NCBI GenBank assembly: GCA_002269645.1 | Contig: NIVC01002344.1 | Location: 62,001 to 126,000 of the forward strand | Source: Macrostomum lignano | Taxonomy: Eukaryota | Length of the DNA: 64,000 nt | Direction of reading: 5' to 3' | Part shown: positions 606 to 61,800 of the stretch, one piece after another | Layout: every line of letters begins with the position of its first letter | How positions within the stretch are numbered: position 1 is the first letter of the stretch | Program-made: the position numbers and the translations under genes | Notes under the pieces: generated by a model | The model's input: only the letters and a program-made list of their open reading frames with translations | Told to the model about the DNA's origin: nothing | Database searches by the model: none

Positions 606-651
606 TATGCATAGATAAACATGCTCAGATGAGCACACATTCATACCACAG

Positions 652-5288: not shown

Positions 5289-5544
5289 TATATACTCGTA
5301 TCTACGAGCTCGTAGATACGCTCGTATGTCTATGGTAGAGGTAAGTGTAGGGTGTAATATAAATGAGAAAACGTGCGCAAAGAAAGAAAGAAAGGATTGA
5401 GTTTCCATTAAGAATTAGGAAAACATGGAAGACCGAGTGTTAATAAATCCATTAGTGAACTTTTGCGGAAGATTTTCAAATCGGATCACCGACCAGGACT
5501 TGGAAGATATTCTAAGTGACGGTCTAGATTTACATGATCCGTAC

Positions 5545-6466: not shown

Positions 6467-6572
6467 CAGAGGTCGACGAACTCCGGCCTGCGCGCTACAT
6501 GCAAACCGCCAAGCCTCTCTATCCGGCCCTCGGGTCATCTTGAAATTTCACAATAGCAATCCGGCCCGCTCA
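6467..6572 (+). mobile_element. Possible hAT (Charlie-like) MITE end remnant in CAP intron 1
   Basis: TCTAGAT|CAGAGGTCGACGAACTCCGGCC...AATCCGGCCCGC resembles Charlie-type termini. The second TIR was not found. Confidence 0.3.
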
Positions 6573-7285
6573 AGATTTTTGTCTCATCTCAGCTCGATCT
6601 TCTCAACTCCTTACTTATCTTTTCTCTTCTCTTATCCTATCTCCCATCTCATTTCTCGTCTAATCTAGCCCGCAGCCATGAGCTGGATTCTTTATCCAAT
6701 CCTTGAGGTAAAACGTTTGAAGTTCATGTTTAAATAAAAATTAAGTCGAGAAATCGCTTTAAAAGGTTTTTTCACGTGCAGCGATTGCACTAAAGTGCTC
6801 CTAAAGTGTTTGGAGATTTTTTTTACGTCAGTCATTCGTCTTTAGGACTCGTCTTTAGACAAAATTCCTGAAATTCGAACCTATTTTTTTAGACCTGGAA
6901 AAATAAACTCGAGAACTTGGCTTTAAAGGCAGCCGAAGAGTGCAAATTCGAACACAAGTATCATGGCGAATATGCAAGTTTAGGAGAAAACATTTACAGT
7001 GGCTGGCGGACTGATCCTGTACAGATCATTTTTGCTTGGTTCTCGGAGAAAAGTCAGTACAATCATGACACTCGCAAATGCACTGGCCGGATGTGCGGCC
7101 ACTACACGGCTATCATGTTCGACATCGTTACTCATCTTGGCTGCGCCATCAAGAAAGAGTGCTCAAAAGGAGCGCATATGGTTTTCTGTGAGTATTCTCA
7201 CGGCTCAGGGTAAGCATTCATCAGTTCAGTGTTTCCTATAGTTTCATGAATTATTAAAAAATCAAAAGTAAAATTCGTCAACATC

Positions 7286-8058
<773 letters not shown>

Positions 8059-9861: not shown

Positions 9862-9995
9862 AGTGGTTCCAGTGGTACAGGTGGTTCCAGTGGTACAGGC
9901 GGTTCTAGTGGCACAGGTGGTTCCAGTGGTACAGGTGGTTCCAGTGGTACAGGTGGTTCCAGTGGCACAGGTGGTTCCAGTGGCACAGGTGGCAC
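9862..9995 (+). repeat. 18-bp coding tandem repeat (GSSGTG)n in the last CAP-EGF exon
   Basis: GGTTCCAGTGGTACAGGT units, about 7 copies here versus about 3 at 3228-3295. Confidence 0.9.
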
Positions 9996-10499
9996 CAGTA
10001 GTTCCAATGTTTCTTGGGTACCGAAGCTCGCTGCTAAAGACATCGCACTTGGAAATATTGTTAAATGTCTTTCCGTTTTCCATGCGTGCCTCTTTATCCG
10101 CTCATATCTTGTTTGATCGGCTTGATAAACATAACTTGTTTCCGCAGAAACAACGAATTTTGGATTCGATTTGTGCTCAGAACTGCTTGCTGTTGAATAA
10201 AAATATTTTAGTTTGTAAAATATACTCATCCAAATGTCGAATTGTCTTATTTCCATATTTTTGCAACTTTAAGACCAGCTGCTTCGATCCAATAGACTTT
10301 TACAACTGCATCTCTGAAGCTGATATGCAGCACGAGTTCCTGATAGGGAACTCATTCTGATTTTAAGTCATTTGTAAACTTTTTTTACAATATTTTTGTT
10401 GTATACCGATCCGAATCCAATGTACTTTTATTTTCAGTCGTTGCCCCAGCGTTAATTTATTTGTCTGTGTCCCAAACAGCTACCGACTGACTCTGACTC

Positions 10500-13600: not shown

Positions 13601-14433
13601 CGGACTATCCATTCCAACGCATTCACATGGACTGGGCGCATGTAAGAGGAGCTGGCGACATACTGATTATCGTTGACGCTCATTCTGGCTGGATAGAAGC
13701 GTTTCCCTGCCAAAACAGAGTGGCCAGCACTGTCCAGCGGTGCCTCTGCGCCGTCTTTGCACGCTTTGGTATGCCGGAACTGGTTGTGTCAGACAATCCA
13801 CCCGAATTTGTGGCCGATAGCCTCAACGCATGGCTGCGCGCACATGGAGTGAAGAAAATGGAGTCACCCGCCTACTATGCTCAGGCAAACGGCCTCGCAG
13901 AAAGGGCAGTGCAGACCGTTAAATCAGCGCTGCGTGCATGGTCGGAGAGAATAACTCACATGGATTTCCTATTCTACCTGCAAAAAGTGATCATGCACCA
14001 TCGCAACTCCTCAAGAAGCCGCGGCCAGTGCCCAGCCGAGTTGGTGCTTGGTAGACGCCTTCGTGTACCGGTCGTCTCACAGTTCGAGCAAGGAGACAAC
14101 GTCATCTACCAGCCGCAGAAATCAACTCAGGGAAGCCAGGCTACATTTCTAATGACTGCTGGACACAATACGGCATGGATTTTAGAAGATGAGAGCCTGA
14201 AGCTGGCCAGCACCAATCAGTTGGCCCCATCAATGCCACAGCAGGACGCCCTTACAGCGGACGAAGAGGAAGCGAATGACAATCTGCCTGTGCAACAGCC
14301 CCCGATGCAAATGGCGGCCGGAGAAGAGCAGGCACCAACGACCCATGAGCAGGATGCCCCAGAGCAACCGAATGACAACCCGATGCGCCGAAGCTCGCGA
14401 AATCGTCGGGCCCCTGATCGATTCGTGCCGTAA
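10613..14433 (+). pseudogene. gag-pol polyprotein with two stops and one frameshift in RNase H
   Basis: Zn knuckles CRYCGKAH..C and CSKCGKKNHFASVC; protease IDTGAS; RT YQDD; RH TTDASK; integrase H..H..C..C and MDW..SDN..AERAV. TAA at 12896 (AE*NYS), frameshift near 13030, TAA at 13063 (RIGR*A). Confidence 0.92.
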
Positions 14434-20781: not shown

Positions 20782-32338
<11,557 letters not shown>

Positions 32339-32457
32339 ATCCAGGCTGGTGGCACTTTTAACTGGATTTAGTGTCAGTGTGCGACTACTCTTGGTGCAGT
32401 AGGCTATGATCCGGAAAACATTTTGCGAGAGGAAGCTGATTTCTTTTTATGACAGTC

Positions 32458-32927
32458 CCAATTAGGATGCTAACTATCGCTATTAGGATGCTGAGTAGCT
32501 GAATTAGAATGCTGAATATACCAATTAGGATGCTGAATATCCTAATTAGGATGCTGAATATCCCAATTAGGATGCTGAATATCCCAATTAGGATGCTGAA
32601 TATCCCAATAAGGATGCTGAATATCCCAATTAGGATGCTGAATATCCCAATAAGGATGCTGAATATCCTAATTAGGATGCTGAATATCCCAATTAGGATG
32701 CTGAATATCCCAATTAGGATGCTGAATATCCCAATTAGGATGCTGAATATCGCAATTAGGATGCTGAATATCCCAATAAGGATGCTGAATATCCTAATTA
32801 GGATGCTAAATATCCCAATAAGGATGCTGAATATCCCAATTAGGATGCTGAATATCCCAATTAGGATGCTGAATATCCCAATTAGGATGCTGAATATCCC
32901 AATTAGGATGCTGAATATCCCAATTAG
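32458..32927. repeat. 21-bp minisatellite (AATTAGGATGCTGAATATCCC)n 3' of the helicase stop
   Basis: About 22 units, related to the 40258-41000 array. Confidence 0.97.
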
Positions 32928-33574
32928 GTAAAGCGAAAAGTTAAAAAAGTAGCCGCTCATTTGCCCCTTTTTGTCTCTCCCAGCGCATTTTACAATAATA
33001 TGTGCGTGTTTACCTGAGAGCATGGCATCCCAGTCCCAGTGCCCAGTGCTGTATTTTTGTACCTTTTTCTGCACCAAAATCCCGTTTGGTTTTTTTGTTA
33101 ATCGTGTCATGCGCTTCATTTATTATAATCTTAAATTGCCTACTTGCAGTAGCTAAAGTAGTGCATGTCGTGTTTAAACTGGTCCGGTATTTTATTTTAA
33201 TAATGATTATGATATAATAATTAAAAAACAAAAAAGTGAATTTTAGTTTTTGTTTGTTTATCTCACTGTTTCTTATGACCTACTGATGCTACTTGTAGTA
33301 ATAAGGCAGGCACGCGCGTTGTTATTTTTGTAAAATCGAACAGCACGGCCCATACGGTGTATTAATAGTTAATATCTTTGTGTGTAATTTTTATAATTCT
33401 CTAATAAATATCAATTCAGCAAGCACCCATAGTTTAAATCCGCTTGGGTTAAGAAATTTCGAGTTGAAAAAATTGAATTTCAAGTTGCTTTTTTCATTTT
33501 TTGCTCTTACTAAAATCTTCAGTGTATCAAAGTCTGTCTGATATGCCAAATTGGATTCGTCCGTAATTTACTGT

Positions 33575-34965
33575 GAGTGTCGCCTCTAATTCACTGAAAG
33601 AGTTGCCTCTGCATTGAGAGTCGCCTCTTTCCTACTCTGAGCCTGAGAGTCTCCTCTTACCTACCCTGAGAGTCGCCTCTTACCTACGCTGAGCCTGAGA
33701 GTCTCCTCTGACTTACCCTGAGAGTCGCCTCTAACTTACCTTGCGAGTCGCCTCCAACATGCTCTGAGAGTCGCCTCTGACCTGCCCTGAGAGTCGCCTC
33801 TGACCTTCCTAAGAGTCGTCTCTTACCTATTCTAAGAGTCTTCTCTGACCTACCCTGGGAGTCGCCTCTAACTTACCCTTAGAGTCGCCTCTAACTAACC
33901 CTGAGAGTCGCCTCCAACCTACCCTTAGAGTCGCCTCCGACCTGCCCTGAAAGTCGGAGTTACCTGACTTACCCTGAGAGTCGCCTCTGACCTACCCTGA
34001 GAGCAGCCTCTGACCTGCCTGAGAGTCGACTCTGACTTACCCTAAGAGACGCAGTCGCCTCTAACCTACCCCAAGAGTCAATCCTGACTTATTTTGAGAG
34101 TCGCCCCTGACTTACCCGGAGACTCGCGTCTAACCTACCCTGAGATTCAGCTCCAACCTACCCTGAGATTCAGCTCTAACCTACCCTGAGATTCAGCTCT
34201 AACCTACCCTGAGATTTAGCTCCAACCTACCCTGAGATTCAGCTTCAACCTACCCTGAGATTCAGCTCTAACCTACCCTGAGATTCAGCTCTAACCTACC
34301 CGGAGATTCAGCTCTAACCTGCCTTGAGATTCAGCTCCAACCTACCCTGAGATTCAGCTTCAACCTACCCTGAGATTCAGCTCTAACCTACCCGGAGATT
34401 CAGCTCTAACCTACCTTGAGATTCAGCTCTAACCTACCCGGAGATTCAGCTCTAACCTACCTTGAGATTCAGCTCTAACCTACCTTGAGATTCAGCTCCA
34501 ACCTACCCTGAGATTCAGCTCCAACCTACCCTGAGATTCAGCTCTAACCTGACCTGAGATTCAGCTCCAACCTACCCTGAGATTCAGCTCCAACCTACCC
34601 TGAGATTCAGCTCTAACCTAACCTTAGATTCAGCTCTAACCTACCCTGAGATTAAGCTCCAACCTACCCTGAGATTCAGCTCTAACCTAACCTGAGATTC
34701 AGCTCTAACCTAACCTGAGATTCAGCTCTAACCTACCCTGAGATTCAGCTCCAACCTACCCTGAGATTCAGCTCTAACCTACCCTGAGATTCAGCTCTAA
34801 CCTGCCCTGAGATTTAGCTCTAACCTAACCTGAGATTCAGCTCTAACCTACCCTGAGATTCAGCTCTAACCTACCCTGAGATTTAGCTCTAACCTGCCCT
34901 GAGATTTAGCTCTAACCTAACCTGAGATTCAGCTCTAACCTACCCTGAGATTCAGCTCTAACCTA
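33575..34965. repeat. 22-23-bp minisatellite grading from GAGAGTCGCCTCTAACCTACCCT to GAGATTCAGCTCTAACCTACCCT
   Basis: About 60 units, degenerate 5' and homogeneous 3'. Confidence 0.95.
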
Positions 34966-35147
34966 CATGTACCCTGAAAAACACTTCTAAACCCTTGAGT
35001 GAGTCACTCTATTTCACTCATGAATGTTCAGGAGTTATGCAGTTACAAAATGTGTTAGTTCTCATGTCTCAAGGCTAGTCTACCGCCCTCACTGCTCAAC
35101 ATGTTGCATGCGAGCCTAGCTCGTCAACTCAAAAGACTTTCAAACTC

Positions 35148-36002
35148 ATGGACTCAACTCGTGGCGGCGGTCGTGGCGGATTCCGCGGCGGTTTCGGAGG
35201 CCGAGGCGGCGGCGACAGGGGCGGCGGTGAGCGCGGCGGCGGTGGTCGCGGCAGGGGCGGACGCGGCGGTCGCGGAGGACGCGGCGGCCGCGGTGGTCGC
35301 GGAGGTCGCGGCGGCGATAAGAAAGAGGAGTGGCAGCCGGTCACCAAGCTGGGCCGGCTAGTCAAAGACGGCAAGATCAAAAGCCTGGAAGAGGTGTACA
35401 TGTTTGCCCTGCCAATTAAAGAGTCGGAAATTATCGACCAGTTCCTTGGCGGCCGGCTCAAAGACGAGGTGCTGAAGATCATGCCGGTGCAGAAGCAGAC
35501 CAGAGCCGGACAGCGCACCCGGTTCAAGGCGATTGTAGCGATTGGAGACTTTGACAAGCACGTCGGACTGGGGGTGAAGTGCTCCAAGGAGGTGGCCACC
35601 GCCATCCGTGGCGCCATCATCTTGGCTAAGCTGTCGGTCATCCCAGTGAGGCTGGGCTACTGGGGCAATAAGATCGGCAAGCCCCACACGGTGCCGTGCA
35701 AGCTGACTGGCAAATGCGGCTCTGTTGTGGTGCGCCTCATCCCAGCGCCTAGAGGCACCGGCATTGTTGGCGCTCCGGTGCCTAAGAAGCTGCTGAGCAT
35801 GGCCGGCATTGATGATGTGTACACCTGCTCGAAGGGACAGACCGCCACTCTAGGCAACTTTGCCAAGGCTACCTACATGGCTATTCAGGCTACGTTTGAG
35901 TACCTATCACCTGACCTGTGGCCTGAGACTACCGCCCCCAATCATCCGTATGCTGAGCACAGCGACTTCCTAATGAAGGCTGGTAGGCCCTACCGTCATT
36001 GA
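35148..36002 (+). CDS. RPS2: 40S ribosomal protein S2 (uS5), 284 aa, no intron in the CDS
   Basis: RGG-rich N-terminus; [64 protein letters not shown] and TLGNFAKAT. Confidence 0.98.
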
Positions 36003-36261
36003 AGGCTTGAAAGCCGTTCGATTTTTAGCTGTCGTGGACGCCACCGCTTCACTGATTTTGAGTCCAAAGTGGAATTGTCTTGTTGACGAGCTGGCTGATA
36101 TGCGCTAAGGGACATCACATAAATTGATTCATGTTGGAGAGGGAAATATACTTTTACGCTCCTTTTTCTTGGAATAAGACGTGGCGTTTTGTCTCATTCT
36201 TTTTGCTTTCTTGTTAACATTAGTTAGAATCTTAGATTAGACTCCAGCCTATCGTGAGAAC

Positions 36262-37557
36262 AGCCTCTTAATCCACTGACAGTCGCCTCTAATCCACTGA
36301 GAGTCGCCTCTAATCCACTGAGAGTCGCCTTTAATCCACTGAGATTCGCCTTTAATCCACTGAGATTCGCCTCTAATCCACTGAGATTCGCCTCTAATCC
36401 ACTGAGAGTCGCCTCTAATCCACTGAGAACCGCCTCTAATCCACTGAGAACCGCCTCTAATCCACTGAGAACCGCCTCTAATCCACTGAGAACCGCCTCT
36501 AATCCACTGAGAACCGCCTCTAATCCACTGAGATTCGCCTCTAATCCACTGAGAACCGCCTCTAATCCACTGAGAACCGCCTCTAATCCACTGAGAACCG
36601 CCTCTAATCCACTGAGAACCGCCTCTAATCCACTGAGAACCGCCTCTAATCCACTGAGAACCGCCTCTAATCCACTGAGAACCGCCTCTAATCCACTGAG
36701 AACCGCCTCTAATCCACTGAGATTCGCCTCTAATCCACTGAGAACCGCCTCTAATCCACTGAGAACCGCCTCTAATCCACTGAGAACCGCCTCTAATCCA
36801 CTGCGAACCGCCTCTAATCCAGTGAGATTCGCCTCTAATCCACTGAGAACCGCCTCTAATCCACTGAGATTCGCCTCTAATCCACTGAGAACCGCCTCTA
36901 ATCCACTGAGATTCGCCTCTAATCCACTGAGAGTCGCCTCTAATCCACTGAGAGTCGCCTTTAATCCACTGAGATTCGCCTCTAATCCACTGAGAGTCGC
37001 CTCTAATCCACTGAGAGTCGCCTCTAATCCACTGAGAGTCGCCTTTAATCCACTGAGATTCGCCTCTAATCCACTGAGAACCGCCTCTAATCCACTGAGA
37101 ACCGCCTCTAATCCACTGAGAACCGCCTCTAATCCACTGAGAACCGCCTCTAATCCACTGAGATTCGCCTCTAATCCACTGAGAACCGCCTCTAATCCAC
37201 TGAGATTCGCCTCTAATCCACTGAGAATCGCCTTTAATCCAGTGAGAACCGCCTTTAATCCAGTGAGAACCGCCTCTAATCCACTGAGAGTCGCCTCTGA
37301 TCCATAGAGAATCGCCTCTAATCCACAAATAACCGCCTCTAATCCATTGAGAATCGCCTCTAATACACTGAGAATCGCCTCTAATCTACTGAGAGTCGCC
37401 TCTAATCCAGTAAGAACCGCTCTAATCCACTGAGAGTCGCCTCTAATCCAGTAAGAACCGCTCTAACCAACTGAGAATCGCCTCTAATCCACAAATAGCC
37501 ATCTCTAATCCATTGAGAACCGAATCTAATCCACTGAATGCCGCCTCTAATCCACTG
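36262..37557. repeat. 21-bp minisatellite (AATCCACTGAGAACCGCCTCT)n downstream of RPS2
   Basis: About 60 units with GAGTCG/GATTCG/GAACCG variants. Confidence 0.97.
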
Positions 37558-37959
37558 CTAGAAAGATTCGTCCCTAACCACCCCAAAAGTGACTGTCTGT
37601 CTGCTCAGCTAATCTATAATGCAGCATTGATTCCTACCATTTTCTTCTTTAAAGTCAGACTGGTCGTTCGCTTCCAGCACTGTATAATTCGGTTACAGTG
37701 TGCAGCCTCTCACTGTTGAGTTCAATAGTCTCTGTGACGCCTGGAAGGCTCAAGAAAATTACCATCTATTTTTAAGGCTCAAATGTCCGTTTCTTTATCT
37801 CTGCTTCTTCCTCTGTTCCCTGTGTCTCTTTTGCCGGTTCGCTGCTTTGACGCCTCTGTGTGCTTGCTGGGTTTGCTGCTTCTAGCCTGGTCGTTTCATT
37901 AGCATCATCTGCTCTGCTGCTCACCCAGCTCAGCTTCTTCAGCCTCATCTGTCTGTCTC

Positions 37960-38226
37960 TTTATCTATCTATCTATCTAACCATCTATCTATCTATCTAA
38001 CCATCTATCTATCTATCTAACCATCTATCTATCTATCTAACCATCTATCTATCTATCTAACCATCTATCTATCTATCTAACCATCTATCTATGTATCTAA
38101 CCATCTATCTATCTATCTATCTAACCATCTATCTATCTATCTAACCATCTATCTATGTATCTAACCATCTATCTATCTCTCTATCGAACCATCTATCTAT
38201 CTATCTAACCATCTATCTATCTATCT
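37960..38226. repeat. (ATCT)n-derived array with 20-bp higher-order unit CTAACCATCTATCTATCTAT
   Basis: The period of 20 is visible directly. Confidence 0.93.
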
Positions 38227-39080
38227 CTGTATGCCTGTTTACGCTCCTACTAGATTAGTTTTATGACCAAACTAGAACCGTTTTTTGCAAGAATCTTTTA
38301 TAAAATTAGTTTTCTTTCGATTATTCGATCTCCTTTAGCTAGAGCGGCATTCATGTCTTCTCCTATTCGATACACAAATAGTTGACAGTCAATTCTTTCG
38401 CCACAAGTGCGTTTTGTTCATTGACTAGAAAACAGTCCTGTTGAGCAGCTACTCAAGAAGGTTCCTCCTCCATAGGATTGGAGTCCTTGAACTGGTGAAG
38501 CGGCTTGAATGACTGTCGCTTTCTACAGTTGTATAGTTCCGCCTTGAATTCTCCATGAATGCTCCACATGCTCTTCGCTCCGTCTCTGAGGCCTCTCCAT
38601 AAATCCATTCTCCGATATTTTCCAATGCGCGCTCCGCATCAAAGCCTGTTTGGTCTGCTGAATTGGGTTGGCGTTGGTTTTTTTGTCAAAGTCCCTATCG
38701 AACAGTTTATATTTTAGAGATTTATCGGCCTCACTATTGCATGAACACTCCGGCTATGCTAGATGTCACATAGATTAACTGACAATGTTATGCGTATGAA
38801 AACAGTGTAATAGAATGCATACATAACGTTCAAAAGAAGGCAAAGCAAGTCGTACACAGACTGGCATCCAATTTGTTGTGGCCGCGTGCGGATTTGAACC
38901 CTGGTAGTCTTTGCTCTCTCTTTAGCACACTAGTTTGGCTTCTTTCAATAAAAGCTTGCAAGCTTTCCAATTCTGTAGCTCCTTGCGGCTTTGCGTTAAA
39001 AATGAAGTTCGTAAGGCTTCTCAAATTTCTTTATAGCTCACTTTGGACGACAGATTTCCATACTAATAAGTTTAGCTGAA

Positions 39081-39093
39081 CCTACTACTACTG

Positions 39094-39168
<75 letters not shown>

Positions 39169-39169
39169 G

Positions 39170-39225
<56 letters not shown>

Positions 39226-39243
39226 TTACTACTACTACTACTT

Positions 39244-39323
<80 letters not shown>

Positions 39324-39386
39324 GCTACTACTACTACTACTACTGCTACTACTACTACTACTACAACTACTACTACAACTACTACT

Positions 39387-39438
<52 letters not shown>

Positions 39439-39460
39439 GCTACTACTACTACTACTACTG

Positions 39461-39507
<47 letters not shown>

Positions 39508-39508
39508 G

Positions 39509-39549
<41 letters not shown>

Positions 39550-39550
39550 G

Positions 39551-39592
<42 letters not shown>

Positions 39593-39613
39593 TACTGCTA
39601 CTACTACTACTAC
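39081..39613. repeat. (CTA)n microsatellite
   Basis: About 530 bp of CTA with CTG/CTT interruptions. Confidence 0.98.
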
Positions 39614-39721
39614 AGCTAGTACTGATACGAATACCTCTTGCGTCAATTCAATCTTAATTAATTTAAAACGCCCTTGCCCCTGTGTAAATAGAAATGGCAA
39701 ATACATATTGAACAATTTCAG

Positions 39722-41575
39722 CGCGACATTCATTGATGCCTCTGGCCTGTCTCGGTCCGGGCCGCCAGCCGGCCGCCGGGTCCTCACTCCGAGCGGCCTG
39801 CCAGTGCCTCAACGTTGACCTGCTAGTGACAGTGGCATGTAGCAGCTCTAGCCAGTCAAACGATAATGACTCTCTGAAACTGCTGATGTCAAAGCTGCAC
39901 GCTGTCTCGGGTAAGAAACCACAGGCTTCCGGGGGTCAAAAGAAAAATCCTACAAGAAAAAATGTGTCTTCTTTTAAAGAACACTCTTAAAAAGCTGTTG
40001 TAGGAGATGCGGTGGTCTTGTTTTAGGAATCCTTACTTTTTCTTTCTTTTTTCGCGCGTTCTTAAAAGCCAAAGCTAAATTCGTTTTCCCACCTGACCGA
40101 AGTTTTTTACTGTTGCTGCCAGGGTAATTGGCTGAATGACAGCTGCAATATTTTCGCAATTTTCGCAACATATCGGTAGATTGTTTAATGTTTGAACTCC
40201 CAGGGAACGTGAAGCATTTACTCTTATATAATCTATATTGAAGTAGCCCAAATAAGATGCTTAATATCCCCAATTAGAAATCTGAAATATCCCCAATTAG
40301 AAATCTGAATATCCCCAATTAGAATGCTGAATATCCCCAATTAGAATGCTGAATATCCCCAATTAGAATGCTGAATATCCCCAATTAGAAATCTGAAATA
40401 TCCCCAATTAGAAATCTTAATATCCCCAATTAGAATGCTGACTATCCCCAATTAGAATGCTGAATATCCCCAATTAGAAATCTGAAATATCCCCAATTAG
40501 AAATCTGAATATCCCCAATTAGAATGCTGACTATCCCCAATTAGAATGCTGAATATCCCCAATTAGAATGCTGAATATCCCTAATTAGAATGCTGAATTT
40601 CCCCAATTAGAAATCTTAATATCCCCAATTAGAAATCTGAGTATCCCCAATTAGAATTCTGAATATTCCCAATTAGAATTCTGAATATTCCCAATTAGAA
40701 ATCTGAATATTCCCAATTAGAAATCCGAATATCCCCAATTAGAAATCTGAATATCCCCAATTAGAAATCTGAAATATCCCCAATTAGAAATCTGAATATC
40801 CCCAATTAAAAATCTGAAATATCCCCAATTAGAAATCTGAATATCCCCAATTAGAAATCTGAAATATCCCCAATTAGAAATCTGAAATATCCCCAATTAG
40901 AAATCTGAAATATCCCCAATTAGAAATCTGAAATATCCCCAATTAGAAATCTGAAATATCCCCAATTAGAAATCTGAAATATCCCAATTAGAAATCTGAA
41001 TATTCCTAATCATGATGCTGAATTTCCGGAATCCCGATAAAGAACTCAATATTTCCCTGCTCCATTAAGTAAAAAGATGTTAATAAATATCAAAATAGGG
41101 ATCTATATTACAATATTACGACGCTGATAATACATATTAATATCCCAATCAGGTCGTCAGGAAGAGTCACTAACCCATGCTTCCCATCCCCACAGCAAGC
41201 AGCTCAGCATTAGGCAGCAACAGCCTCAGCATCCAGCCTTCGCTACCAGCGCATCTCAACCTACCAAAAGGACAGAGCTGGCTAAGCAGTCCCACTGCAG
41301 ACTGGGACACCAGCCTCATGCTGCCAGAATCTGCTACTCAGGCGTCTGCATCAACTGGCTCGGCTTCCTCAGTGATGTATCAGGATTTGACCGAGTCAGC
41401 CGCTGTTAACTCCGCCGATAGCAGTCTGATGTCGTTCACTTGTCTAATATGCAACACAGGCTGTTTCCTGTACTGCTTAGAGGATAAGCAAGCACTGCTG
41501 ATGGCTGCTCAGGATTCAAATCCCGGTAGTAGTCAGGAAGCTTTATTGCCAGTTGCTCTTCTTGGACAAATTTTG
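39722..41575 (+). CDS. Two exons (39722-39910, 41196-41575) of an uncharacterised gene with CxC and CxxC motifs
   Basis: TTTCAG acceptor and G|GTAAGA donor (phase 1). The next acceptor, CTAAC..CCCCACAG at 41195, is also phase 1, with a TTG|GTAAGT donor. Reads ..LRAACQCLNVDLLV.. and ..SFTCLICNTGCFL.. Confidence 0.6.
40258..41000. repeat. 22-23-bp minisatellite (CCCCAATTAGAAATCTGAATAT)n in an intron
   Basis: About 33 units, same family as 32458-32927. Confidence 0.96.
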
Positions 41576-42049
41576 GTAAGTTGCGGCTTGTTTCAGATCT
41601 CATGGCGATGAGAAAGTCCCGGGCTTGATGATTTTCCTATTTAATTTGACACGACACCTCTAATAAAAATATCTGTGTAGAAATGTAAAGTTTTTTTAGT
41701 CCAAGACTTTTTAAGTGCCCAAGCTGCACTTTAGGCACCAGCCATCAAGTGTTTACAATCTAGCGTATGTTTATGCAGGTGTTCGCATGATAATTCCGAC
41801 ACTTTAATAACCTAGGGTAGATGCCTAAAATTAGTTTTATAATCTTTTAGCACAGTGAATATTGCTCTAATGCTATAGCACTGCCTTCTTCCTAGCGGGT
41901 ATCGTAATATGACCATGTCGCAGATACGCCGTTGCGTGTTGTAAAATTTCAATTCCAATGCAAATTTAGCGGATCGTGTATCCACCTGACTGACTGGCTG
42001 GCCTAAATTGCTGTGGGTGTTCGATTTCTCTGGGATACCTTTTTAGCGG

Positions 42050-44212
<2,163 letters not shown>

Positions 44213-45034
44213 ATGTTTGTAAAGCTTGACGGAATCCTCGCACTTGCCCGCCAGCAGTTCATTTTTACTGAGCTCGCTGTGGCTTATATCCCGCCACTCT
44301 ACTCCCAACTGTCAATGCAGAAGTATTGAACCCGTCAATATATGCGTAGTATTTATATGCCTAAAATCCCCTGCAGCGATATTGATATTTTCTACGAGGA
44401 CTGGGCTAACGACAAGCCTTATTAAGCCCCCCCCTCTGTATCAGCAGATGCCCAACCAGTGAATGTTATGAAAAGACGATTGCGTTACAATTCCCAACTC
44501 TCTACTCTAGCATGATACTATGGAGATAAAAACGGTTGCATCCGCGCTGCCCGTGAATACATCAATCTACTATAGATTTTTCTCATGAATGATATTGATT
44601 GTAGCTTTGTGAATTGTGTAGCATAGTGTTATTCGGCTAGTATGTGCGTCAAATTCTTAATTCCCGACGCGTTAGAAAAAACGCGTGGATTTTTTTTGCA
44701 GCATACCTCGTATTGAGTTAATTAGCGCTTCGGTGCCTAGATTGTTGCACCTGTCGCTCGCAATCTGTGCCAATTCTTCACTGTTCTCCCTCCTGCAGAA
44801 ATGATTGTGATTAGACAGGTGAAGTGTGCTGGTCAGCGGCGCAAAGATGAAGATGAGATAGCAGATGGCCGCTTATGTTTTATCAGCCGTGAACTCAGCA
44901 GTGTTGGTTATTAATTTGAGAACTATCTAGATAATAAGTGTTGTATAGGAGTGCAAAAATAAGAACAGAAGGTAACTGCTAATGAGCAACTGGTCAAACC
45001 TGTGATATTAAGTCGTGACTGTGCCAGATTTATC

Positions 45035-45560
45035 TCATGAATAAATCGACTGCACACAAGTGAATATCAGTTGATTTGACGTCATTGATGGCTTAGATAA
45101 AGTCACTTTCACCCTGCAACAATATCTGGACAGATTAAATGCTAAGCATGCCCTGGTTTCTGCCGACTTGTCAGAATTTTGGTCAGCTGTCGGGAATCTT
45201 TTGCTAAATATACGTAGCTTTTTTCGCATTGAATTTAATCCAAGAAAGGTTTGAAAATGCAACGGAGATCCTTCAACTTCTGTTGCATTTTCTGCAACGT
45301 CAACAAAGGGTTCGTCTCAACTGCATCGAATAGCAGTTGGACCAGAGGCTCTCGCAACTTGCCTTGGTGATTTTCACCGCTTCGCAGGCGATCTTTGCCG
45401 CCAGTGGTTTCAACGCGCTGATGGGTGTTGTAAACCATATTTTCTTTTACATTCAGGAGCCTTGCAATGTCCTTTGGGTGTTCACCTCTGTCCAGTGCTT
45501 CGATCATAAGCCCAGCATATGGTCCACAATTCTGAGGCTGATCTTGCTCCACCGCAGCAG
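45035..45560 (-). mobile_element. Decayed Tc1/IS630-type transposase N-terminal fragment
   Basis: MIEALDRGEHPKDIARLLNVKENMVYN..RVETTG..RSG..KL..VETNPLLTL resembles the paired HTH region. The frame breaks afterwards and no TIRs were found. Confidence 0.55.
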
Positions 45561-46524
45561 TTGCAAATGAAGCTATGGACCAAATTAATGCTTGTTGGAC
45601 CAAATTAAATGCCGCTGTGCCAACCTTGCTACCATTGCAGACAAAAGTTCCATTACATTGGCAAACGTATCTTGGATTAAATTAAATGCACACAAGCCCA
45701 AATGGGCTGAAAAAAGCTGTAGTAGAAAACGAATAAACAAAAGGCTACAAAACGTCACGAGTTGTCTATGGCCAACAGATGAGTACTCCACTCCCCGGTC
45801 CTGTCAGTGGGGTGTTTCGGAGTAGGAGTCAAAGTCTGCGCCTTGCAGCAAACTTCTCGAAACCATGAGTTGATGACTTAATCTCAGATTGGATTAATAA
45901 TCCCATAATTATAGCTTTGATCTGCAGCAACAATGCCCAAAAATATGCTTGCATAATTATTTACGGCAATCCATCTCTGCACTAGATTTGTCTTTAGAAA
46001 TCAATTCTAGCCAAGTTTCAAAGTTGAATAAGTGAAGCTGTCCGTTTGCACTTTATTGTGTATACTGCATGGCTAGATCTTCCTAAATAGCTTTTTTATT
46101 TTTTGCGTGCAGATTATAATGCCACTTAGATGAATATGGAAAGAGTTAATGAAAATCAATATTATTTATCCATGGAATCATTATAGTAATACTCTGCGCA
46201 TAAAGAGGACTCCATTGAGCCTATTGGGCTTTGTATAGGATTAAAGAATATCCTGCTGGAAATTGAAATGCCGCTTATGCCTGTCTAGTCGATAAGATTA
46301 GAGTGAGTCTCTTTACGGCACTTTAACTCCAGCCGAAAAAAAGTCTGCGATATAATTTATTGGGGAGTTTAAATTTTTTCTGCGCAACGATTGTACCGGT
46401 AGTCTGACACCGCTTCTTTGCTTGGAGTTGATTTATGGCATATTCTGATTTTTTAACAGCAGAAAAATAAGCCTCATAGAGTAGCGCTATGACTGCTTCT
46501 TTTGGGAAAACTGGTGTTTAACAG

Positions 46525-46890: not shown

Positions 46891-48335
46891 GTTACTATAT
46901 TATAGATCTACCAGCATTTTGCGTACTATGCAAAACAGTAATGTTGAATGGGAAGATGGTGCATTTCTGCTACAGTACAGTAGTATGCTTTTATTCTATC
47001 TACTGCGCTTTGGTTGCTATTTAAATAGGAGCCTCCAAAATATCCGCTAGATGCCTTCTCACAAGCCCTTGTGAGTGTCATGCGTCCACCGATAAGCTGA
47101 TCTGCCAAGTAAAAGGGAAAGTAATGATTGCTCTAGGTGAAACCCGAATGAGCGCACTGCCGAGTGTTCACCCAGAAGTTTCAGGGCATGCATTTTAATG
47201 TGTGTACGTGTGCGTGTGAATAGCGCCAGTGAATTTTTGTTCAAACGAATGGTTTACATTTTGTTACGCGGGATTGTAGATTATTTTTTCCAGCTGTAGA
47301 GCGTGCGGAAAAAATGATTAGAAAGCGACTGGCGCCTCTAATATATTGAAAAAAAGTTTTCGAATGCCAGGATTGTCACTACTGCATCATAAACAGATGA
47401 TGAGTGATGCTGGTGACACGAAAGCTGAAGCTGGGCTAAGCTTGTCTCCCATCTGTCTCCGCGTTCCGATCATGCTGTCAGGAAATCAGTCTAATTCCAT
47501 TTCCTATTATTGTTTCTGCGTGTGCAGTGCCTTATAGCATTTCTAAAGCTCGCTTTTAACGAATAAATTTTACGAGTAAAACGCGATCTCTCTCTGCTCT
47601 GTATTTTAAGCGATTTAAGAGTGCGAAAACGTGACTTAAAGTCTTACTAGTGTAAAAAAACAGTCTTAATTAAAACTTTATGCTAGCATGTCCATTGCCA
47701 ATTTCATGCTACTTAAATCTGAAAAAGGATTTGTGCTTGTTTTTACTAAAAGTACATATCTGTCCCTCCCAACGACTACGCAATGCAAAAGCTATGAAAA
47801 ACTATTCCTAAGTGATCGAATACACTTCCTTGATACACTTGTGTTTTTGTCCCCTGAGTGTGATGATACAGATGTGAATTTCGATATTTATATTGTTTCG
47901 TTTTTTATCATTTTGTCTGGATGTTTTTTCGCGCTAAAATACACACTGGTTCTGTAAGTGGAAGGTTAGGGCTTAATGAAATGCTCTTGACGTTTTGTTA
48001 CCTGCATGCAATTCCACTAATCAGTTTGGTCGCACACTTGGATAGGCTCAGCGTGTGCCTAAGTGTATCACTCTAGTAATGCCATCTTCTTTCGGTTTGG
48101 ATAATTCCATAAAGTAACAAAAATCTTTTCCGTTTGAAATACCTGTCTTTGCTAGCAGTATCCGTCTCTTTTGTCCAGCTCTTTTTGATTGTAAGGACTT
48201 AAGACTTCTTTTTAATCAATGTAGAGCCTAAGGGAAAGAAAAATTGCATGTATCAATTTATACATTCGTCTGCCTTTTGGCCATCTGGGTTATTGTAATT
48301 TTAAGCATTTAGTTTATGAATCACTTCATAGTATT

Positions 48336-50966
48336 CCCGATGGGAAAAGGGCAGCCTCTAATTTTTACCCTAGCCTCAAACGCAGCCTCAAATGAACCTC
48401 AAAGCGGATTTTTCGAGGCTGGTTTGATGCTAGCCTCAACAATAGTCTTCAGCATTGAAAGAGATTGTATTTGATGCTGGATTCGAGGCTCGAGTAAAGG
48501 CTTTATTTGAGCCTGGATTTGATGTTTAATTTAGAGGCTAAATTTGAAGCTAGATTAGAGGTTGAATTCGAGGCTGGAATAGAGGCTGGATTCGATGTTC
48601 AAGTTAGCGGCTGGATTCGATGTTTAAGTTGGCGGCTGGATTCGATGTTCAAGTTAGAGGCTGGATTCGATGTTTAAGATAGCGGCTGGATTCGATTTTC
48701 AAGTTATAAAGGCTGGATTAGAGGTCGGATTAGAGGCTGGATTAGAGGTTGGATTAGAGGTCGGATTAGAGGCTGGATTAGAGGCTGGATTAGAGGTCGG
48801 ATTAGAGGCTGGATTCGAGGCTGGATTCGAGGCTGGATTAGAGGTCGGATTAGAGGCTGGATTAGAGGTTGGATTAGAGGTCGGATTAGAGGCTGGATTA
48901 GAGGCTGGATTAGAGGTTGGATTAGAGGTCGGATTAGAGGCTGGATTCGAGGCTGGATTCGAGGCTGGATTAGAGGTCGGATTAGAGGCTGGATTAGAGG
49001 CTGGATTAGGGGCTGGATTAGAGGTTGGATTAGAGGTCAAATTAGAGGCTGGATTAGAGGTCGGATTTGAGGCTAGATTAGAGGTTGAATTCGAGGCTGG
49101 AATAGAGGCTGGATTCGATGTTCAAGTTAGCGGCTGGATTCGATGTTTAAGTTGGCGGCTGGATTCGATGTTCAAGTTAGAGGCTGGATTCGATGTTTAA
49201 GATAGCGGCTGGATTCGATTTTCAAGTTATAAAGGCTGGATTAGAGGTCGGATTAGAGGCTGGATTAGAGGTTGGATTAGAGGTCGGATTAGAGGCTGGA
49301 TTAGAGGCTGGATTAGAGGCTGGATTAGAGGTTGGATTAGAGGTCGGATTAGAGGCTGGATTAGAGGCTGGATTAGAGGTCGGATTAGAGGTTGGATTAG
49401 AGGTCGGATTAGAGGCTGGATTAGAGGCTGGATTAGAGGTTGGATTAGAGGTCGGATTAGAGGCTGGATTCGAGGCTGGATTCGAGGCTGGATTAGAGGC
49501 TGGATTAGGGGCTGGATTAGAGGCTGGATTAGGGGCTGGATTAGAGGCTGGATTAGGGGCTGGATTAGAGGTTGGATTAGAGGTCAAATTAGAGGCTGGA
49601 TTAGAGGCTGGATTAGAGGCTGGATTAGAGGTCGGATTAGAGGCTGGATTAGAGGCTGGATTAGAGGTCGGATTAGAGGCTGGATTAGAGGCTGGATTAG
49701 AGGTCGGATTAGAGGCTGGATTCGAGGCTGGATTCGAGGCTGGATTAGAGGTCGGATTAGAGGCTGGATTAGAGGTTGGATTAGAGGTCGGATTAGAGGC
49801 TGGATAAGAGGCTGGATTAGAGGTTGGATTAGAGGTCGGATTAGAGGCTGGATTCGAGGCTGGATTCGAGGCTGGATTAGAGGTCGGATTAGAGGCTGGA
49901 TTAGAGGCTGGATTAGGGGCTGGATTAGAGGTTGGATTAGAGGTCAAATTAGAGGCTGGATTAGAGGCTGGATTAGAGGTTGGATTAGAGGTCGGATTAG
50001 AGGCTGGATTCGAGGCTGGATTAGAGGTCGGATTAGAGGCTGGATTAGAGGCTGGATTAGGGGCTGGATTAGAGGTTGGATTAGAGGTCAAATTAGAGGC
50101 TGGATTAGAGGTCGGATTAGAGGCTGGATTAGAGGTCGGATTAGAGGCTGGATTAGAGGCTGGATTAGAGGTCGGATTAGAGGTCGGATTAGAGGCTGGA
50201 TTAGAGGTCGGATTAGAGGCTGGATTCGAGGCTGGATTAGAGGTCGGATTAGAGGCTGGATTAGAGGCTGGATTCGAGGCTGGATTAGAGGTCGGATTAG
50301 AGGCTGGATTAGAGGCTGGATTAGAGGCTGGAAGAGAAGCTCAAGTTGGAGGCTTAATGGTGTGTGCCTGCAGCTCTTTTGCAAATAGAGGAGCAAATAT
50401 CCCTCCCACAAAAATGTGAACTCTGTATATACTCGCCTGTACCCAGTAAGACACCCGTCTTTGTATAAGCGAATACGTTGTGTGCACTGTATCTTAAGGA
50501 GGGAAAATATACTACGAGTATGCAGATATCTGCGTGGCAGATAAGTTATATTTCATAATTCCATATATCGTTATTGTTTAGTATTGTTTAGTACGTTACA
50601 ATACAATCCATATGACCGATTATATGGCCTTTTAACATCTTTATAAACAGACATTGTCTAACTGTTTATTATTGCCTTGGAAAAAACTACGCCAGTCTCG
50701 AATCCATCCTCTAATTGAGCGTCTAATTCAGCCTCTAATCCAGCCTCCAATTCAGCATCGAATCGCCAGCCTCTAATCCAGCCTCCAATACGAGCCTTAA
50801 ATAGCGAGCATTAAATCTGGGTCATTTTTAGAGGCTGCCGCACTCAAGAGTCGAGCCTCTAACCTAGCCTCTAGCCTCCCATTGGTTTAGTGTAACCAAA
50901 TAAAAAATCATTAGAGGCTAGCGCCAAAAAGTAAGCCTCCAACACCCCTCCAGATTTCCCATCGGG
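48336..50966. mobile_element. Non-autonomous CACTA/CMC-like DNA transposon (2631 bp) carrying a 12-bp satellite
   Basis: 12-bp TIR CCCGATGGGAAA / TTTCCCATCGGG with ATT on both flanks. AGCCTC(TAATCC) motifs occur in both orientations near both ends. Confidence 0.7.
48410..50335. repeat. 12-bp array (GGATTAGAGGCT/GGATTAGAGGTC)n with a 523-bp higher-order duplication
   Basis: The block at 48541-48720 recurs at 49064-49243. Confidence 0.97.
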
Positions 50967-52196
50967 ATTTAGAATTTGCAGTGAGCTTACACTAAATCGA
51001 TTTTATTAAGATAACAAGTTTTTTGCTAACAAAAGTTTGTGGTTGTCCTTGCAGATCACAAATAAAATGAGCAATGAAATGGGGAGTTGGGGTATTGAAC
51101 TGCTGTAGGGATCATGAGTTGTATTTTGAGTTGTATAGTTTAACTTTAGAATTGACTTTGCTATTAGGATCTTGCAGAGCTACACACATGTTCAAGTGTG
51201 TGTCTTTAGTACACATGTAGCCTGTAAATTGAAGGGGGTGACGTTTCATAAACTCAAAATTGATGCCAAATTTTCGATTTTGTAAGGTTCAAAAACCTTA
51301 ACAATGCGAATGAGACAATAATTCTAAGAGGTTTATTTTCTCGAGGCAAGATTTTGACTTGCATTGGTCGCCTGGAGTGGCATAAAAATTAAGGTCAACA
51401 TATTATTTTATTTGGCAGCTCTCCGTGTTACTCGTACCTAAACTCAATTCTGGTTCATGTGTGCAATCACATTTTCTCCTGTTAAGTTCTGACTGTTTTA
51501 AGGCCTCCCTTGTTTTAGCCAAGCAAACTAATTAACTTTCAAAGGAAATTGTGCCTGTCGAGTATAACGACTACTTGATTTACTCTTCCTCAGAAATTTG
51601 ATTCATGAAAGGAGACGCTGTCCCAGCTTTGTATCATTCTAATTTCCCTTTAGACTTCGTTTCCTCAAGACTGTTATTGCTAGTTCGAGTGGCTTTTTTC
51701 CTGGCTAGAATTTGAAATTAGAAGACTCATCGGGTTTTGATATTTAAATGAAACGCAAATCAGCGGCAAAGGTTATTATGCTACCGGTAGTGTTGCGCTC
51801 AAGCTTGCATGCAAGTGTGTTTAATAGCTTCAATATGCAAACGCATCGATTCAAAAGTCTTTACCATACACCTCTAACTGGACACTAAATGACGATTATT
51901 TCCAATTGTGATGTCACTATGCATAAAAGATTGAACTGCACATTTAGAAGCCATAAATATGGCTTTTTCTAAGTTGCAATGATCAGATTGAATCTAGGAG
52001 CAAGCAATTTAATAATTGGTGGGGGAATCAAGCTATTTAAAACTAGTCTTTCATTATCTATGGCCTAAGGGGGTCTCAAAAGTAGCAAAACCAGAATTGC
52101 ATGCGTTTCAGCCTTGGAAATGCAATCATAATGTTAGATGATTATTGTTCCCTTTTATATCTATGGCCATATGTCATATGCGTTTTGCGCTCTGGT

Positions 52197-55726: not shown

Positions 55727-59917
<4,191 letters not shown>

Positions 59918-61431: not shown

Positions 61432-61800
61432 TCGAAGTTGCTGGGCCAGCCTCCCAGACTGTCAGTTGCTGCGCCAGCCTCCCAGATCTCAATTGCTGGG
61501 CCAGCCTCCCAAAGTGTCAGTTGCTGGGCCAGCCTCCCAGATCTCAATTGCTGGGCCAGCCTCCCAGAGTATCAGTTGCTGGTCCAGCCTCCCAGATCCT
61601 CAGTTGCTGGGCCAGCCTCCCAGAGTATCAGTTGCTGGGCCAGCCTTCCATATCCTCAGTTGCTGGGCCAGCCTTCCATATCCTCAGTTGCTGGGCCAGC
61701 CTCCCAGATCCTAAATTGCTGGGCCAGCTTCCCAGATCCTCAGTTGCTGCACCAGCTTCCCAGATTTTCAGTTGCTGGGCCAGCCACCCTCTCAGTTTGC
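61432..61800. repeat. 28-bp minisatellite (GTTGCTGGGCCAGCCTCCCAGAGTATCA)n
   Basis: About 13 units. Confidence 0.93.

Follow-up and report, generated by a model that had tools for sequence, protein, structure and literature searches.

Within a 64,000-nucleotide stretch of Macrostomum lignano DNA (contig NIVC01002344.1:62001-126000; hereafter the window), positions 48336-50966 are best explained as one copy of a non-autonomous, foldback-type class II transposon that inserted at ATT and whose left arm then expanded in situ, a reading to which we assign a probability of roughly 0.6. Elements of this type are already known, and a single copy was seen here, so that its past mobility, which we infer, rests on one copy. 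The features of the element and its immediate flanks are as follows, with strand in brackets.

48333..48335 (unstranded): left copy of the putative target-site duplication, ATT, read from the sequence and identical to 50967-50969
48336..48347 (+): left terminal inverted repeat (TIR), CCCGATGGGAAA, perfect reverse complement of 50955-50966
48348..48468 (+): left subterminal region, with AGCCTC at 48353, 48372, 48384 and 48432 and GAGGCT at 48415; aligns with the reverse complement of the right arm
48469..48714 (+): outer degenerate left-arm tract of diverged 12-mers and 24/25-bp variant units, GGCTGGATTCGATGTTCAAGTTAGC (TRF and sequence)
48539..49623 (+): segmental duplication within the left arm at a 523-bp offset, 48539-~49100 and 49062-~49623 (gapless lag identity)
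48715..49110 (+): 12-mer block 1, 33 in-register monomers of GGATTAGAGGCT and variants (monomer typing)
49111..49237 (+): second block of 25-bp variant units, a duplicate of 48588-48714 (TRF; inside the 523-bp-lag duplication)
49238..50329 (+): 12-mer block 2, 91 in-register monomers in five main variants (motif matches, monomer typing and TRF)
50333..50689 (unstranded): central non-repetitive loop, 357 bp, without a complete ORF of its own (ORF list, Rfam, ARAGORN)
50690..50797 (-): right-arm repeat tract of about 8 degenerate 12-mers, AGCCTCTAATCC on the + strand, inverted relative to the main array (TRF, 74% matches)
50798..50954 (-): right subterminal region, with AGCCTC at 50854, 50866, 50873 and 50934 and GAGGCT at 50831 and 50914 (core count)
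50955..50966 (-): right TIR, TTTCCCATCGGG on the + strand (sequence read)
50967..50969 (unstranded): right copy of the putative target-site duplication, ATT (sequence read)

Three features give the unit transposon-like boundaries: its TIR is perfect, a direct repeat of 3 bp flanks it, and the motif domain goes no further than the termini. An initial annotation of this DNA had described a 12-bp TIR starting with CCC and an ATT on both flanks, and each is present at the positions listed. The left and right TIRs are the only two matches to CCCGATGGGAAA in the window at two or fewer mismatches, one in each orientation. The element flanks read TATT on the left and ATTT on the right, around termini that read CCC...GGG; a 2-bp duplication reading fails at these flanks, and the flank sequence rules out a direct repeat longer than 3 bp. 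The same annotation had allowed for a 13-bp TIR (T...A); the additional base at each end simply belongs to the adjoining ATT, T coming from the left copy and A from the right one. By itself, the 12-mer pair is not significant, with 2.9 matches expected at two or fewer mismatches, and inverted matches of 12-13 bp lie no more than 900 bp away at 3 of the 20 other arrays in the window. Because such matches are not rare here, the TIR carries conviction only when taken with its position and the ATT repeat. In AT-rich DNA, a flank match of 3 bp has a chance probability of a few per cent, and a flanking direct repeat is absent at all other inverted matches near window arrays.

The short core motif AGCCTC/GAGGCT, which was originally noted as scattered in both orientations near each end, is indeed found in both orientations within 130-170 bp of each element end. 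The left region contains 5 cores in 133 bp (48336-48468, TIR included; Poisson P about 4e-8) and the right region contains 6 in 169 bp (50798-50966, TIR included; Poisson P about 3e-9). Against a background of 0.67 per kb elsewhere in the window, both subterminal regions are about 55-fold enriched; the loop has one core match only (2.8 per kb). Motif-rich sequence stops 17 bp short of one terminus and 27 bp short of the other, with zero core matches across the 1.3 kb upstream and 4 kb downstream of the element. Within the right subterminal region, GGCAGCCTCTAA (50828-50839, inverted) matches 48350-48361 on the left.

The right arm (50690-50966) repeats the left one in shortened, degenerate and inverted form, and the arms are now 277 bp and 1,997 bp long, respectively. 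Alignment of the left 265 bp with the right arm yielded a score of 155 as the reverse complement and 77 in direct orientation, while random genomic segments scored 40 ± 16 with a maximum of 96.5; in a comparison against shuffles, the arms scored 156.5 versus 49 ± 8. The right-arm tract, whose 12-mer motif matches span 50694-50791, forms inverted-repeat pairs (78 nt, 79-82%) with the left array in many registers. Folded as single-stranded DNA, 50100-50966 has a z of -8.8, the inner array pairing with the right arm across the loop. The sole perfect stretch between the arms is the terminal 12 bp, the remainder being about 50-70% identical, and constraint on the tips would be expected to yield this combination of perfect tips and diverged arms. 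Long inverted arms of tandem subrepeats around a non-repetitive middle are what define foldback elements as a structural class; this foldback architecture is the better structural description of the locus and was absent from the initial annotation. Searches detected no similarity to the loop elsewhere in the window, no RNA family (Rfam) or tRNA (ARAGORN) across the window, loop included, and no complete ORF outside the repeat frames in the element (ORF list). We also considered a PacBio palindrome artefact and rejected it, as the arms are diverged and very unequal in length instead of being a perfect sequence followed by its reverse complement.

These observations bear on whether there is a transposon at all. 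The locus could alternatively be a complex minisatellite that evolved locally through an inverted duplication of part of the array along with its edge; the TIR match and the ATT repeat would then have arisen by coincidence or as a by-product. Such an origin draws on the abundance of unstable arrays, which saturate the genome: tandem arrays make up about 28% of the window, and arrays at matching positions differ 2- to 15-fold in copy number between homeologs. The chance inverted matches near other arrays point the same way. Nevertheless, we regard this origin as unlikely. An inverted duplication that included the left boundary would leave AAT, not ATT, beyond the right end, and on both sides the perfect match coincides exactly with the outer limit of the motif domain even though the adjacent arms are diverged. 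By a rough estimate, finding a 12-bp inverted match within ~100 bp of both domain edges and, in addition, a 3-bp direct repeat has a chance probability of ~1e-5, and the other inverted matches near arrays all lack the direct repeat.

The transposon reading must also account for the great difference in arm length. The entire left-arm repeat tract (48469-50332) covers 1864 bp with about 135-155 tandem 12-mers (GGATTAGAGGCT), a length that is possibly inexact given a PacBio-based assembly; the earlier figures of about 150 copies and 1.9 kb were thus fair. TRF reports a 12-bp unit in 134.7 copies with 83% matches over 48710-50332, and the strictly in-register monomers number 124, in two blocks. 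Longer periods overlie the 12-mer, with TRF rows at 48509-49101 (period 24), 48469-50332 (period 48) and 49103-49229 (period 25, 5.1 copies). Monomer typing reads block 1 as BACBAABADDBACBAACBADDBAAECBFBGHIJ, and in block 2 higher-order strings recur, such as CBADDBAAECBF. The 523-bp higher-order duplication reported previously is real: lag-523 identity is 96.5% over 48539-48827 versus 49062-49350 (289 bp) and, beyond this, 86-100% (43-50/50) per 50-bp bin to about 49100. A recent one-sided expansion fits these data, since divergence is higher among the right-arm repeats (74% matches) than in the long array (83%), and since the long array combines five main variants, recurring higher-order strings and a highly similar duplication. 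In-situ expansion is routine in M. lignano, as the share of arrays in the window and the copy-number differences between homeologous arrays indicate. With regard to origin, the monomer consensus GGATTAGAGGCT is identical to two perfect right-arm copies (50730 and 50768), and degenerate copies occur in both subterminal regions, so that, as in a satellite derived from a transposable element, the array monomer is homologous to non-array sequence of the element. Since each arm holds degenerate copies of the array 12-mer in both orientations, the simplest origin is that the element's own subrepeats expanded.

We therefore propose the following course of events as a working model. The element would have inserted into an ATT target and duplicated it, such that the pre-insertion site is expected to read ...CATAGTATTTAGAATTTGC... 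with a single ATT. Each end would have carried CCCGATGGGAAA followed by an arm of degenerate 12-bp units (AGCCTCTAATCC from outside to inside on the right arm), the arms being mutually inverted across the 357-bp unique loop. A non-coding element of this kind would need a transposase supplied in trans. The inner left arm would then have grown in place, through replication slippage and through unequal exchange among 12-mers, including at least one segmental duplication at the 523-bp offset, from something like roughly 8 copies, as on the right, to the present number. We infer that this expansion followed insertion. The 12-mer itself may be a protein-binding site, an assignment made by analogy.

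The initial annotation went further and derived the satellite from a transposase-binding site. Growth of the element's own 12-mer remains the simplest origin, and the binding-site part, made by pure analogy, is weakened, since the same 12 nt sit in a 21-bp array that has no TIRs. The further suggestion that the array could titrate the transposase is speculative. Every unit of the 21-bp array (36255-37557) includes the full 12-nt period, GCCTCTAATCCA, which indicates that the motif is not specific to the element. A diverged form, GCCTCTAA, lies within a 23-bp array (33564-34966), and CCAGCCTC lies within a 28-bp array (61436-61789); the other 15 array consensus units compared have just 4-6 nt in common with the 12-nt period. 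As to arrays of the monomer outside the element, the window holds only the related 21-bp and 23-bp ones. These two arrays flank RPS2, lack TIRs and occupy the same positions in the homeolog, so they are old and not element-bound.

This distribution would fit an element that is a transposon, yet whose 12-mer belongs to a genome-wide minisatellite core family (GCCTCTAATCC) that was captured or used as building material, the array having then grown in the ordinary way inside a mobile element. The occurrence of related sequence in the 21-, 23- and 28-bp arrays and the age of the RPS2-flanking pair favor such a history. Conversely, the motif lies in both orientations in the non-array subterminal 130-170 bp, which is the layout of En/Spm-type binding sites and not that of a captured array, and the arrays on either side of RPS2 could be what remains of old copies of this element's family. 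For the Xenopus MITE miDNA4, it has been proposed that the element took up a tandem repeat that already existed (PMC12628747). On balance we hold this history to be possible, if on the improbable side, and retain expansion of the element's own subrepeats as the preferred reading. Nothing convincing in the way of TIRs was found around the other 20 arrays of the window, so that an array within a transposon is not a general rule there.

Searches for further copies covered 85 kb of M. lignano DNA, and no second TIR-bounded copy was found in the window or in the 20.9-kb homeologous locus on NIVC01003109.1, which ends at window position 41293, about 7 kb short of the element. On that contig, the counterpart of the insertion site would lie below record position 22019, some 7-10 kb past the end of the locus. 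A 107-aa satellite-frame ORF (50088-50411, - strand), compared with 5.8 billion proteins in the PLIQ frame (of the frames PLIQ, GLEA, SNPA and IRGW), returned four chance low-complexity matches only. In metagenomes, the pattern CCCGATGGGAAA N3-33 AGCCTC, which is too permissive, matched at least 120 loci, and among the matches listed there was no paired TIR or motif enrichment. A 22-nt satellite dimer had 0 matches in viral contigs and one coincidental 2.5-copy match in prokaryote genomes, at a cyanobacterial gene start, and a text search of the literature for the 12-mer returned unrelated primers only. The single occurrence of the element across the window, the homeologous locus, the protein collection and the listed metagenome matches counts toward the minisatellite origin considered above and against the transposon reading. 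Ten flanking ORFs and a 204-aa array ORF are likewise absent from the protein collection. The window also contains a GPCR (P0125) and a gene that begins at 39736 (P0127), each represented in UniRef only and linked to no recorded contig, and it carries retrotransposon ORFs.

As regards the superfamily, a CMC-type element is our best guess from the 3-bp duplication and the CCC terminus, and CMC/CACTA membership is plausible, as flatworm SmTRC1 also starts with CCC. Several superfamilies make 3-bp duplications. PIF/Harbinger elements have a TWA target duplication and GG(G/C)...CC termini, and piggyBac ends also read CCC...GGG, with a TTAA target duplication. Both ends carry short subterminal repeats, direct as well as inverted and enriched about 55-fold, in agreement with CMC; the 3-bp duplication is read from ATT flanks seen in one copy, and the CCC start is weak evidence, consisting of three bases only and being common to other superfamilies. 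The plant CACTA core has a CACTA/CACTG terminus, and the terminus found here is CCCGATGGGAAA. A TIR starting with CCC has been proposed for animal CACTA-related elements, including flatworm SmTRC1 and insect elements (DeMarco et al. 2006, PMC1636069). Of the features that bear on the earlier label of CACTA/CMC-like, the CCC start agrees with SmTRC1; there is no CACTA terminus, no transposase partner was retrieved, and the SmTRC1-type duplication is 2 bp compared with 3 bp here.

The element could instead derive, as a foldback or MITE, from a superfamily outside CMC, such as PIF/Harbinger, Zator, Academ or an atypical piggyBac-like group. The range of superfamilies with 3-bp duplications and the CCC...GGG ends of piggyBac lend this some weight, as does Repbase practice, under which non-autonomous elements are classifiable only through the termini (the first 11 bases in common) and duplication length of their autonomous element (PMC4455052). 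Each named candidate with a defined target conflicts with the flanks, however: ATT is not the TWA of PIF/Harbinger (Tourist-type MITEs), whose ends are GG...CC and not CCC...GGG, and TATT and ATTT are not the TTAA of piggyBac. Three base pairs also exclude hAT, Mutator and P (7-10 bp), to which most described foldback elements belong (PMC4079207). The 7-10-bp duplication of the Mutator-/P-related foldbacks FB, Tetris and Galileo is not seen, the repeat being 3 bp, which excludes these superfamilies and does not exclude the foldback structural class. Altogether we find an origin outside CMC doubtful and keep a CMC-type foldback element as the working assignment.

If its mobility is confirmed, the element would offer a clean, small example, in a flatworm regeneration model, of inverted-arm repeats growing into a satellite-like array. 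Tandem repeats constitute 13% of the M. lignano assembly (PMC5730564 supplement), and confirmation would also supply a named family for part of this poorly classified fraction and of the 3% DNA-transposon fraction, both of which make the genome hard to assemble. A broader analogy, which we consider very improbable, would make GCCTCTAATCCA a putative transposase or host-protein site, with one foldback family having seeded the 12-mer, 21-bp and 23-bp (RPS2) arrays and having become a major source of the tandem-repeat fraction, and with the arrays acting as protein sinks. The route from transposable element to satellite is already well documented in flies, frogs and bivalves, and so the element opens no new question.

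Several known systems resemble the M. lignano element in part. In Drosophila FB, inverted arms consist of short tandem subrepeats that are degenerate toward the tips and lengthen into compound units inward, much as the 12-mers here become 24/25-mers; FB has 9-bp duplications, a different transposase group and usually more symmetrical arms, in contrast to the 3-bp duplication and unequal arms observed here. En/Spm (CACTA) and animal CACTA-related elements share short TIRs and a 2-3-bp target duplication, and En/Spm carries 12-bp subterminal motifs in both orientations; the CACTA terminus is absent from the M. lignano element. SmTRC1 of Schistosoma mansoni likewise has a TIR starting with CCC and an internal tandem-repeat region (PMC1636069), but its 54-bp TIR, 2-bp duplication and Transposase_21 protein differ from the 12-bp TIR, 3-bp duplication and non-coding sequence of our element.

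There are documented cases of tandem repeats growing within foldback elements and MITEs (Tetris, PMC4079207; review, PMC12628747). The Drosophila virilis foldback transposon Tetris (Dias et al. 2014, PMC4079207) is likewise non-autonomous. Its long inverted arms carry tandem repeats and enclose a middle domain that is non-coding, its repeat numbers differ between arms (and, in Tetris, also between alleles), and its repeats have grown into satellite-like arrays of kilobase size. Few structurally complete copies of Tetris are known, and its transposase partner was not found (PMC4079207). Its unit of about 220 bp and its 8-10-bp duplication, which suggests Mutator, differ from the 12 bp and 3 bp found here, and arrays outside the element and multiple copies have been demonstrated for Tetris, whereas one copy is seen here. 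Xenopus miDNA4, Xstir and bivalve MITEs are also short non-autonomous elements with an internal array of variable copy number, for which a route has been proposed whereby the array expands inside the element and the termini decay to leave an ordinary satellite (PMC12628747). In those MITEs the repeat is an internal module distinct from the ends, whereas in the M. lignano element the inverted arms are built of the repeat, which comes as close as 17-27 bp to the termini.

The sequence CCCGATGGGAAA occurs at 48336-48347 and, as an inverted copy, at 50955-50966, and no other match to it is found in the 64-kb window when two mismatches are tolerated. ATT stands directly before the left copy and directly after the right copy of this terminal inverted repeat (TIR). 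The AGCCTC/GAGGCT hexamer (hereafter the core), counted in both orientations, is present five times in the left 133 bp of the element (P ~4e-8) and six times in the right 169 bp (P ~3e-9), compared with a density of 0.67 per kb across the remaining window. Within the element, the outermost core matches sit 17 bp (left) and 27 bp (right) from the termini; outside it, the nearest matches are at a distance of 1.3 kb on the upstream side and 4 kb on the downstream side. We thus recover the 12-bp TIR starting with CCC, the ATT on both flanks, and the scattered subterminal motifs in both orientations reported in the initial annotation.

That description did not include about eight degenerate 12-mers at 50690-50797, which are inverted with respect to the main array. 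Furthermore, when the right arm is reverse-complemented, the left 265 bp align to it with a score of 155, versus 77 in direct orientation and 40 ± 16 for random genomic segments; in a shuffle control the arms scored 156.5 and the shuffles 49 ± 8. Because of these inverted 12-mers and the preference of the arms for inverted alignment, the unit 48336-50966 is a foldback, composed as follows:

48336-50332: left arm
50333-50689: loop, unique sequence of 357 bp
50690-50966: right arm

The single strand of 50100-50966, folded computationally, does far better than its shuffled versions (z = -8.8). Apart from those in the repeat frames, the element has no complete ORF, and a scan for Rfam families and tRNA found none.

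A 12-bp inverted match by itself is no more than chance, as inverted matches of 12-13 bp within 900 bp also occur at three of the twenty other arrays in the window. It is the combination of features that makes the TIR pair convincing: its two copies coincide exactly with the ends of the motif domain on either side, it is the sole perfect stretch in the arms (the remaining arm sequence is about 50-70% identical), and it alone, among inverted-match pairs near arrays, carries a flanking direct repeat. By our rough estimate, an inverted match this close to both domain edges together with a 3-bp direct repeat has a joint chance of order 1e-5. A left boundary duplicated in inverted orientation is unlikely, since it would place AAT at the right end, where ATT is found. 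No further copy of the element was recovered by comparing translated satellite ORFs with the protein collection, by a metagenome scan for the element ends (among the loci listed, at least 120), or by viral and prokaryote scans for the satellite; an exact look-up of eleven local ORFs in the protein collection gave no match.

The long array occupies the left arm. By TRF, 48710-50332 holds 134.7 copies of the 12-bp unit, and the repeat tract, starting at 48469, spans 1864 bp, in keeping with the roughly 150 tandem copies and 1.9-kb satellite previously proposed. Strictly in register are 124 monomers, which fall into five main variants and form higher-order strings that recur. The 523-bp higher-order duplication, also noted earlier, has 96.5% identity over its first 289 bp and extends to about 49100. 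Most likely, 48336-50966 is a non-autonomous cut-and-paste transposon whose inner left arm was later expanded, with mobility inferred from one copy. An element with arms made of the 12-bp subrepeat would have inserted at ATT, after which slippage and unequal exchange would have lengthened the inner left arm. Such an expansion fits the greater homogeneity of the long array relative to the short right-arm tract (83% versus 74% TRF matches), its higher-order strings, and its near-identical segmental duplication.

This expansion needs no special cause, because tandem arrays make up about 28% of the window and their copy numbers differ by a factor of 2 to 15 from those of arrays at matching positions in L121, a 20.9-kb locus of contig NIVC01003109.1. 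L121 runs collinear with window 23213-41293 (about 92-94% identity), ends ~7 kb before the element and, judged by its sequence, represents a second, diverged version of the region on a different contig of Mlig_3_7, the assembly that also holds the window. It is most likely a homeolog, given the neopolyploid genome of M. lignano with its three subgenomes (PMC10733133). The 21-mer array at 26846 has 93 copies in the window and 48 in L121, the 22-mer array at 40263 has 34 and 95, and an ATCT tract measures 0.26 kb and 3.9 kb, respectively. Across the M. lignano assembly, tandem repeats amount to 13% (PMC5730564 supplement).

The 21-bp array (26846-28807, 2 kb) begins inside the final 17 bp of the first of two ORFs containing DEAD-box helicase exons (26437-26862 and 29028-29516, +; a neighbouring gene model has DEAD and Helicase_C domains) and occupies most of the gap up to the second. 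AGAT microsatellites of 0.6 kb (1-617, cut by the window start) and 0.8 kb (7286-8070) lie ~2 kb and ~1.2 kb upstream of the first and second copies of a small, near-identical two-ORF unit (2632-3444 and 9253-10116, about 6.6 kb apart), which encodes a Cys-rich N-terminal part together with GTGGSS repeats; together, these pairs at 1-10116 look like a local tandem segmental duplication.

Like En/Spm ends, the element carries a short motif in both orientations close to its tips (within about 150 bp of each), an arrangement that would suit a transposase-binding site. Against this reading, the complete 12-nt period GCCTCTAATCCA is also present in every unit of the 21-bp array 36255-37557. Reduced forms of it are found in the 23-bp array 33564-34966 and in that of 28 bp at 61436-61789, while the other 15 array consensus units compared have just 4-6 nt in common with it. 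The 8-mer CCAGCCTC is found both in the 28-bp unit AGTTGCTGGGCCAGCCTCCCAGATTCTC and where two element 12-mers join, so that this unit may represent a third relative of the 12-nt core or a chance match. The arrays at 33564-34966 (23-mer CCTGAGAGTCGCCTCTAACCTAC) and 36255-37557 (21-mer CTGAGAGTCGCCTCTAATCCA, containing the whole 12-nt period) are related, share one orientation, and bracket an ORF upstream and downstream, respectively. Their L121 counterparts (9293-9843 and 11134-11743) have about half as many copies (55 versus 24 and 62 versus 29). As neither array has TIRs and both also occur in L121, either the 12-nt motif is a general minisatellite core of the genome, or these arrays are old relics of the element family. 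Titration of a transposase by the array is speculation.

The bracketed ORF (35148-36002) encodes ribosomal protein uS5/RPS2 (Pfam) and is apparently intronless. It is identical to M. lignano PAA53253.1 (the L121 locus) and PAA58688.1 (NIVC01002344.1:87121-108002, 100% identical to window 25121-46002, which places the window at 62001-126000 of that contig) save for a 24-residue gap in the RGG region and a few adjoining residues. Both proteins are marked 'partial'. Since the genomic ORF reads uninterrupted and in frame through the RGG-repeat residues they lack, a GC-rich coding repeat has probably been spliced out or skipped in the gene models.

Upstream of the element, a gene model starts from the ATG at 39736 (+; 39736-44425 and beyond 46002). 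UniRef A0A1I8F104 (140 aa, 'SLC12 domain-containing') matches exons at 39736-39909, about 41192-41395, and 44378-44425, and the NCBI model on this contig, with a product of 547 aa, continues past 46002. Farther downstream no convincing coding ORF was seen, so this doubtful gene model may contain the element or end shortly before it. A 122-aa ORF at 45235-45603 (-), 2.7 kb upstream of the element, has weak, sub-threshold Pfam matches to HTH_29 and HTH_23 (winged-helix/homeodomain-like HTH) and looks like what is left of the N terminus of a Tc1/mariner- or IS630-type transposase; no evidence ties it to the element. Elsewhere, 10613-14433 (+) is the interior of a Ty3/Gypsy-type LTR retrotransposon, its pol frame interrupted between RNase H and integrase: one ORF (10613-12898) carries gag-like, protease, RT, and RNase H domains and a second (13078-14433) integrase domains. 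A two-exon rhodopsin-type GPCR gene (55727-56494 and 59039-59917, -) has 99% identity with UniRef A0A1I8HFG8 (M. lignano, 458 aa) and no NCBI gene model in the protein collection.

The putative 3-bp target duplication rules out hAT, Mutator, and P, the superfamilies of most described foldbacks (PMC4079207). PIF/Harbinger is at odds with the ATT duplication and with ends reading CCC...GGG, and the flanks differ from a piggyBac-type TTAA target. Our best guess from this comparison is CMC: the ends of CACTA-related elements of Schistosoma, Aedes, and Tribolium also start with CCC, and SmTRC1 carries an internal tandem repeat (DeMarco et al., PMC1636069), although those elements have 2-bp duplications. 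In Repbase practice, assigning a non-autonomous element requires that it share the first 11 bases and the duplication length with a classified element (PMC4455052). Of the CACTA/CMC-like transposon with an amplified motif initially proposed, the observation is confirmed and the interpretation partly supported: the expansion fits, but neither end has a CACTA terminus, and the 3-bp duplication differs from the 2-bp one of the CACTA-related elements above.

This type of element is already known; transposable-element repeats expanding into satellite-like arrays have been described in Drosophila, Xenopus, and bivalves. The nearest published parallel is Tetris of Drosophila virilis (PMC4079207): it too is a non-autonomous foldback, its arm repeats differ from arm to arm and from allele to allele, and they have expanded into satellite arrays. 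MITE-borne arrays of Xenopus and bivalves followed the same element-to-array route (PMC12628747). Compared with these, the M. lignano element is distinguished by its very short 12-bp unit, by repeats that reach nearly to the tips, and by its putative 3-bp duplication.
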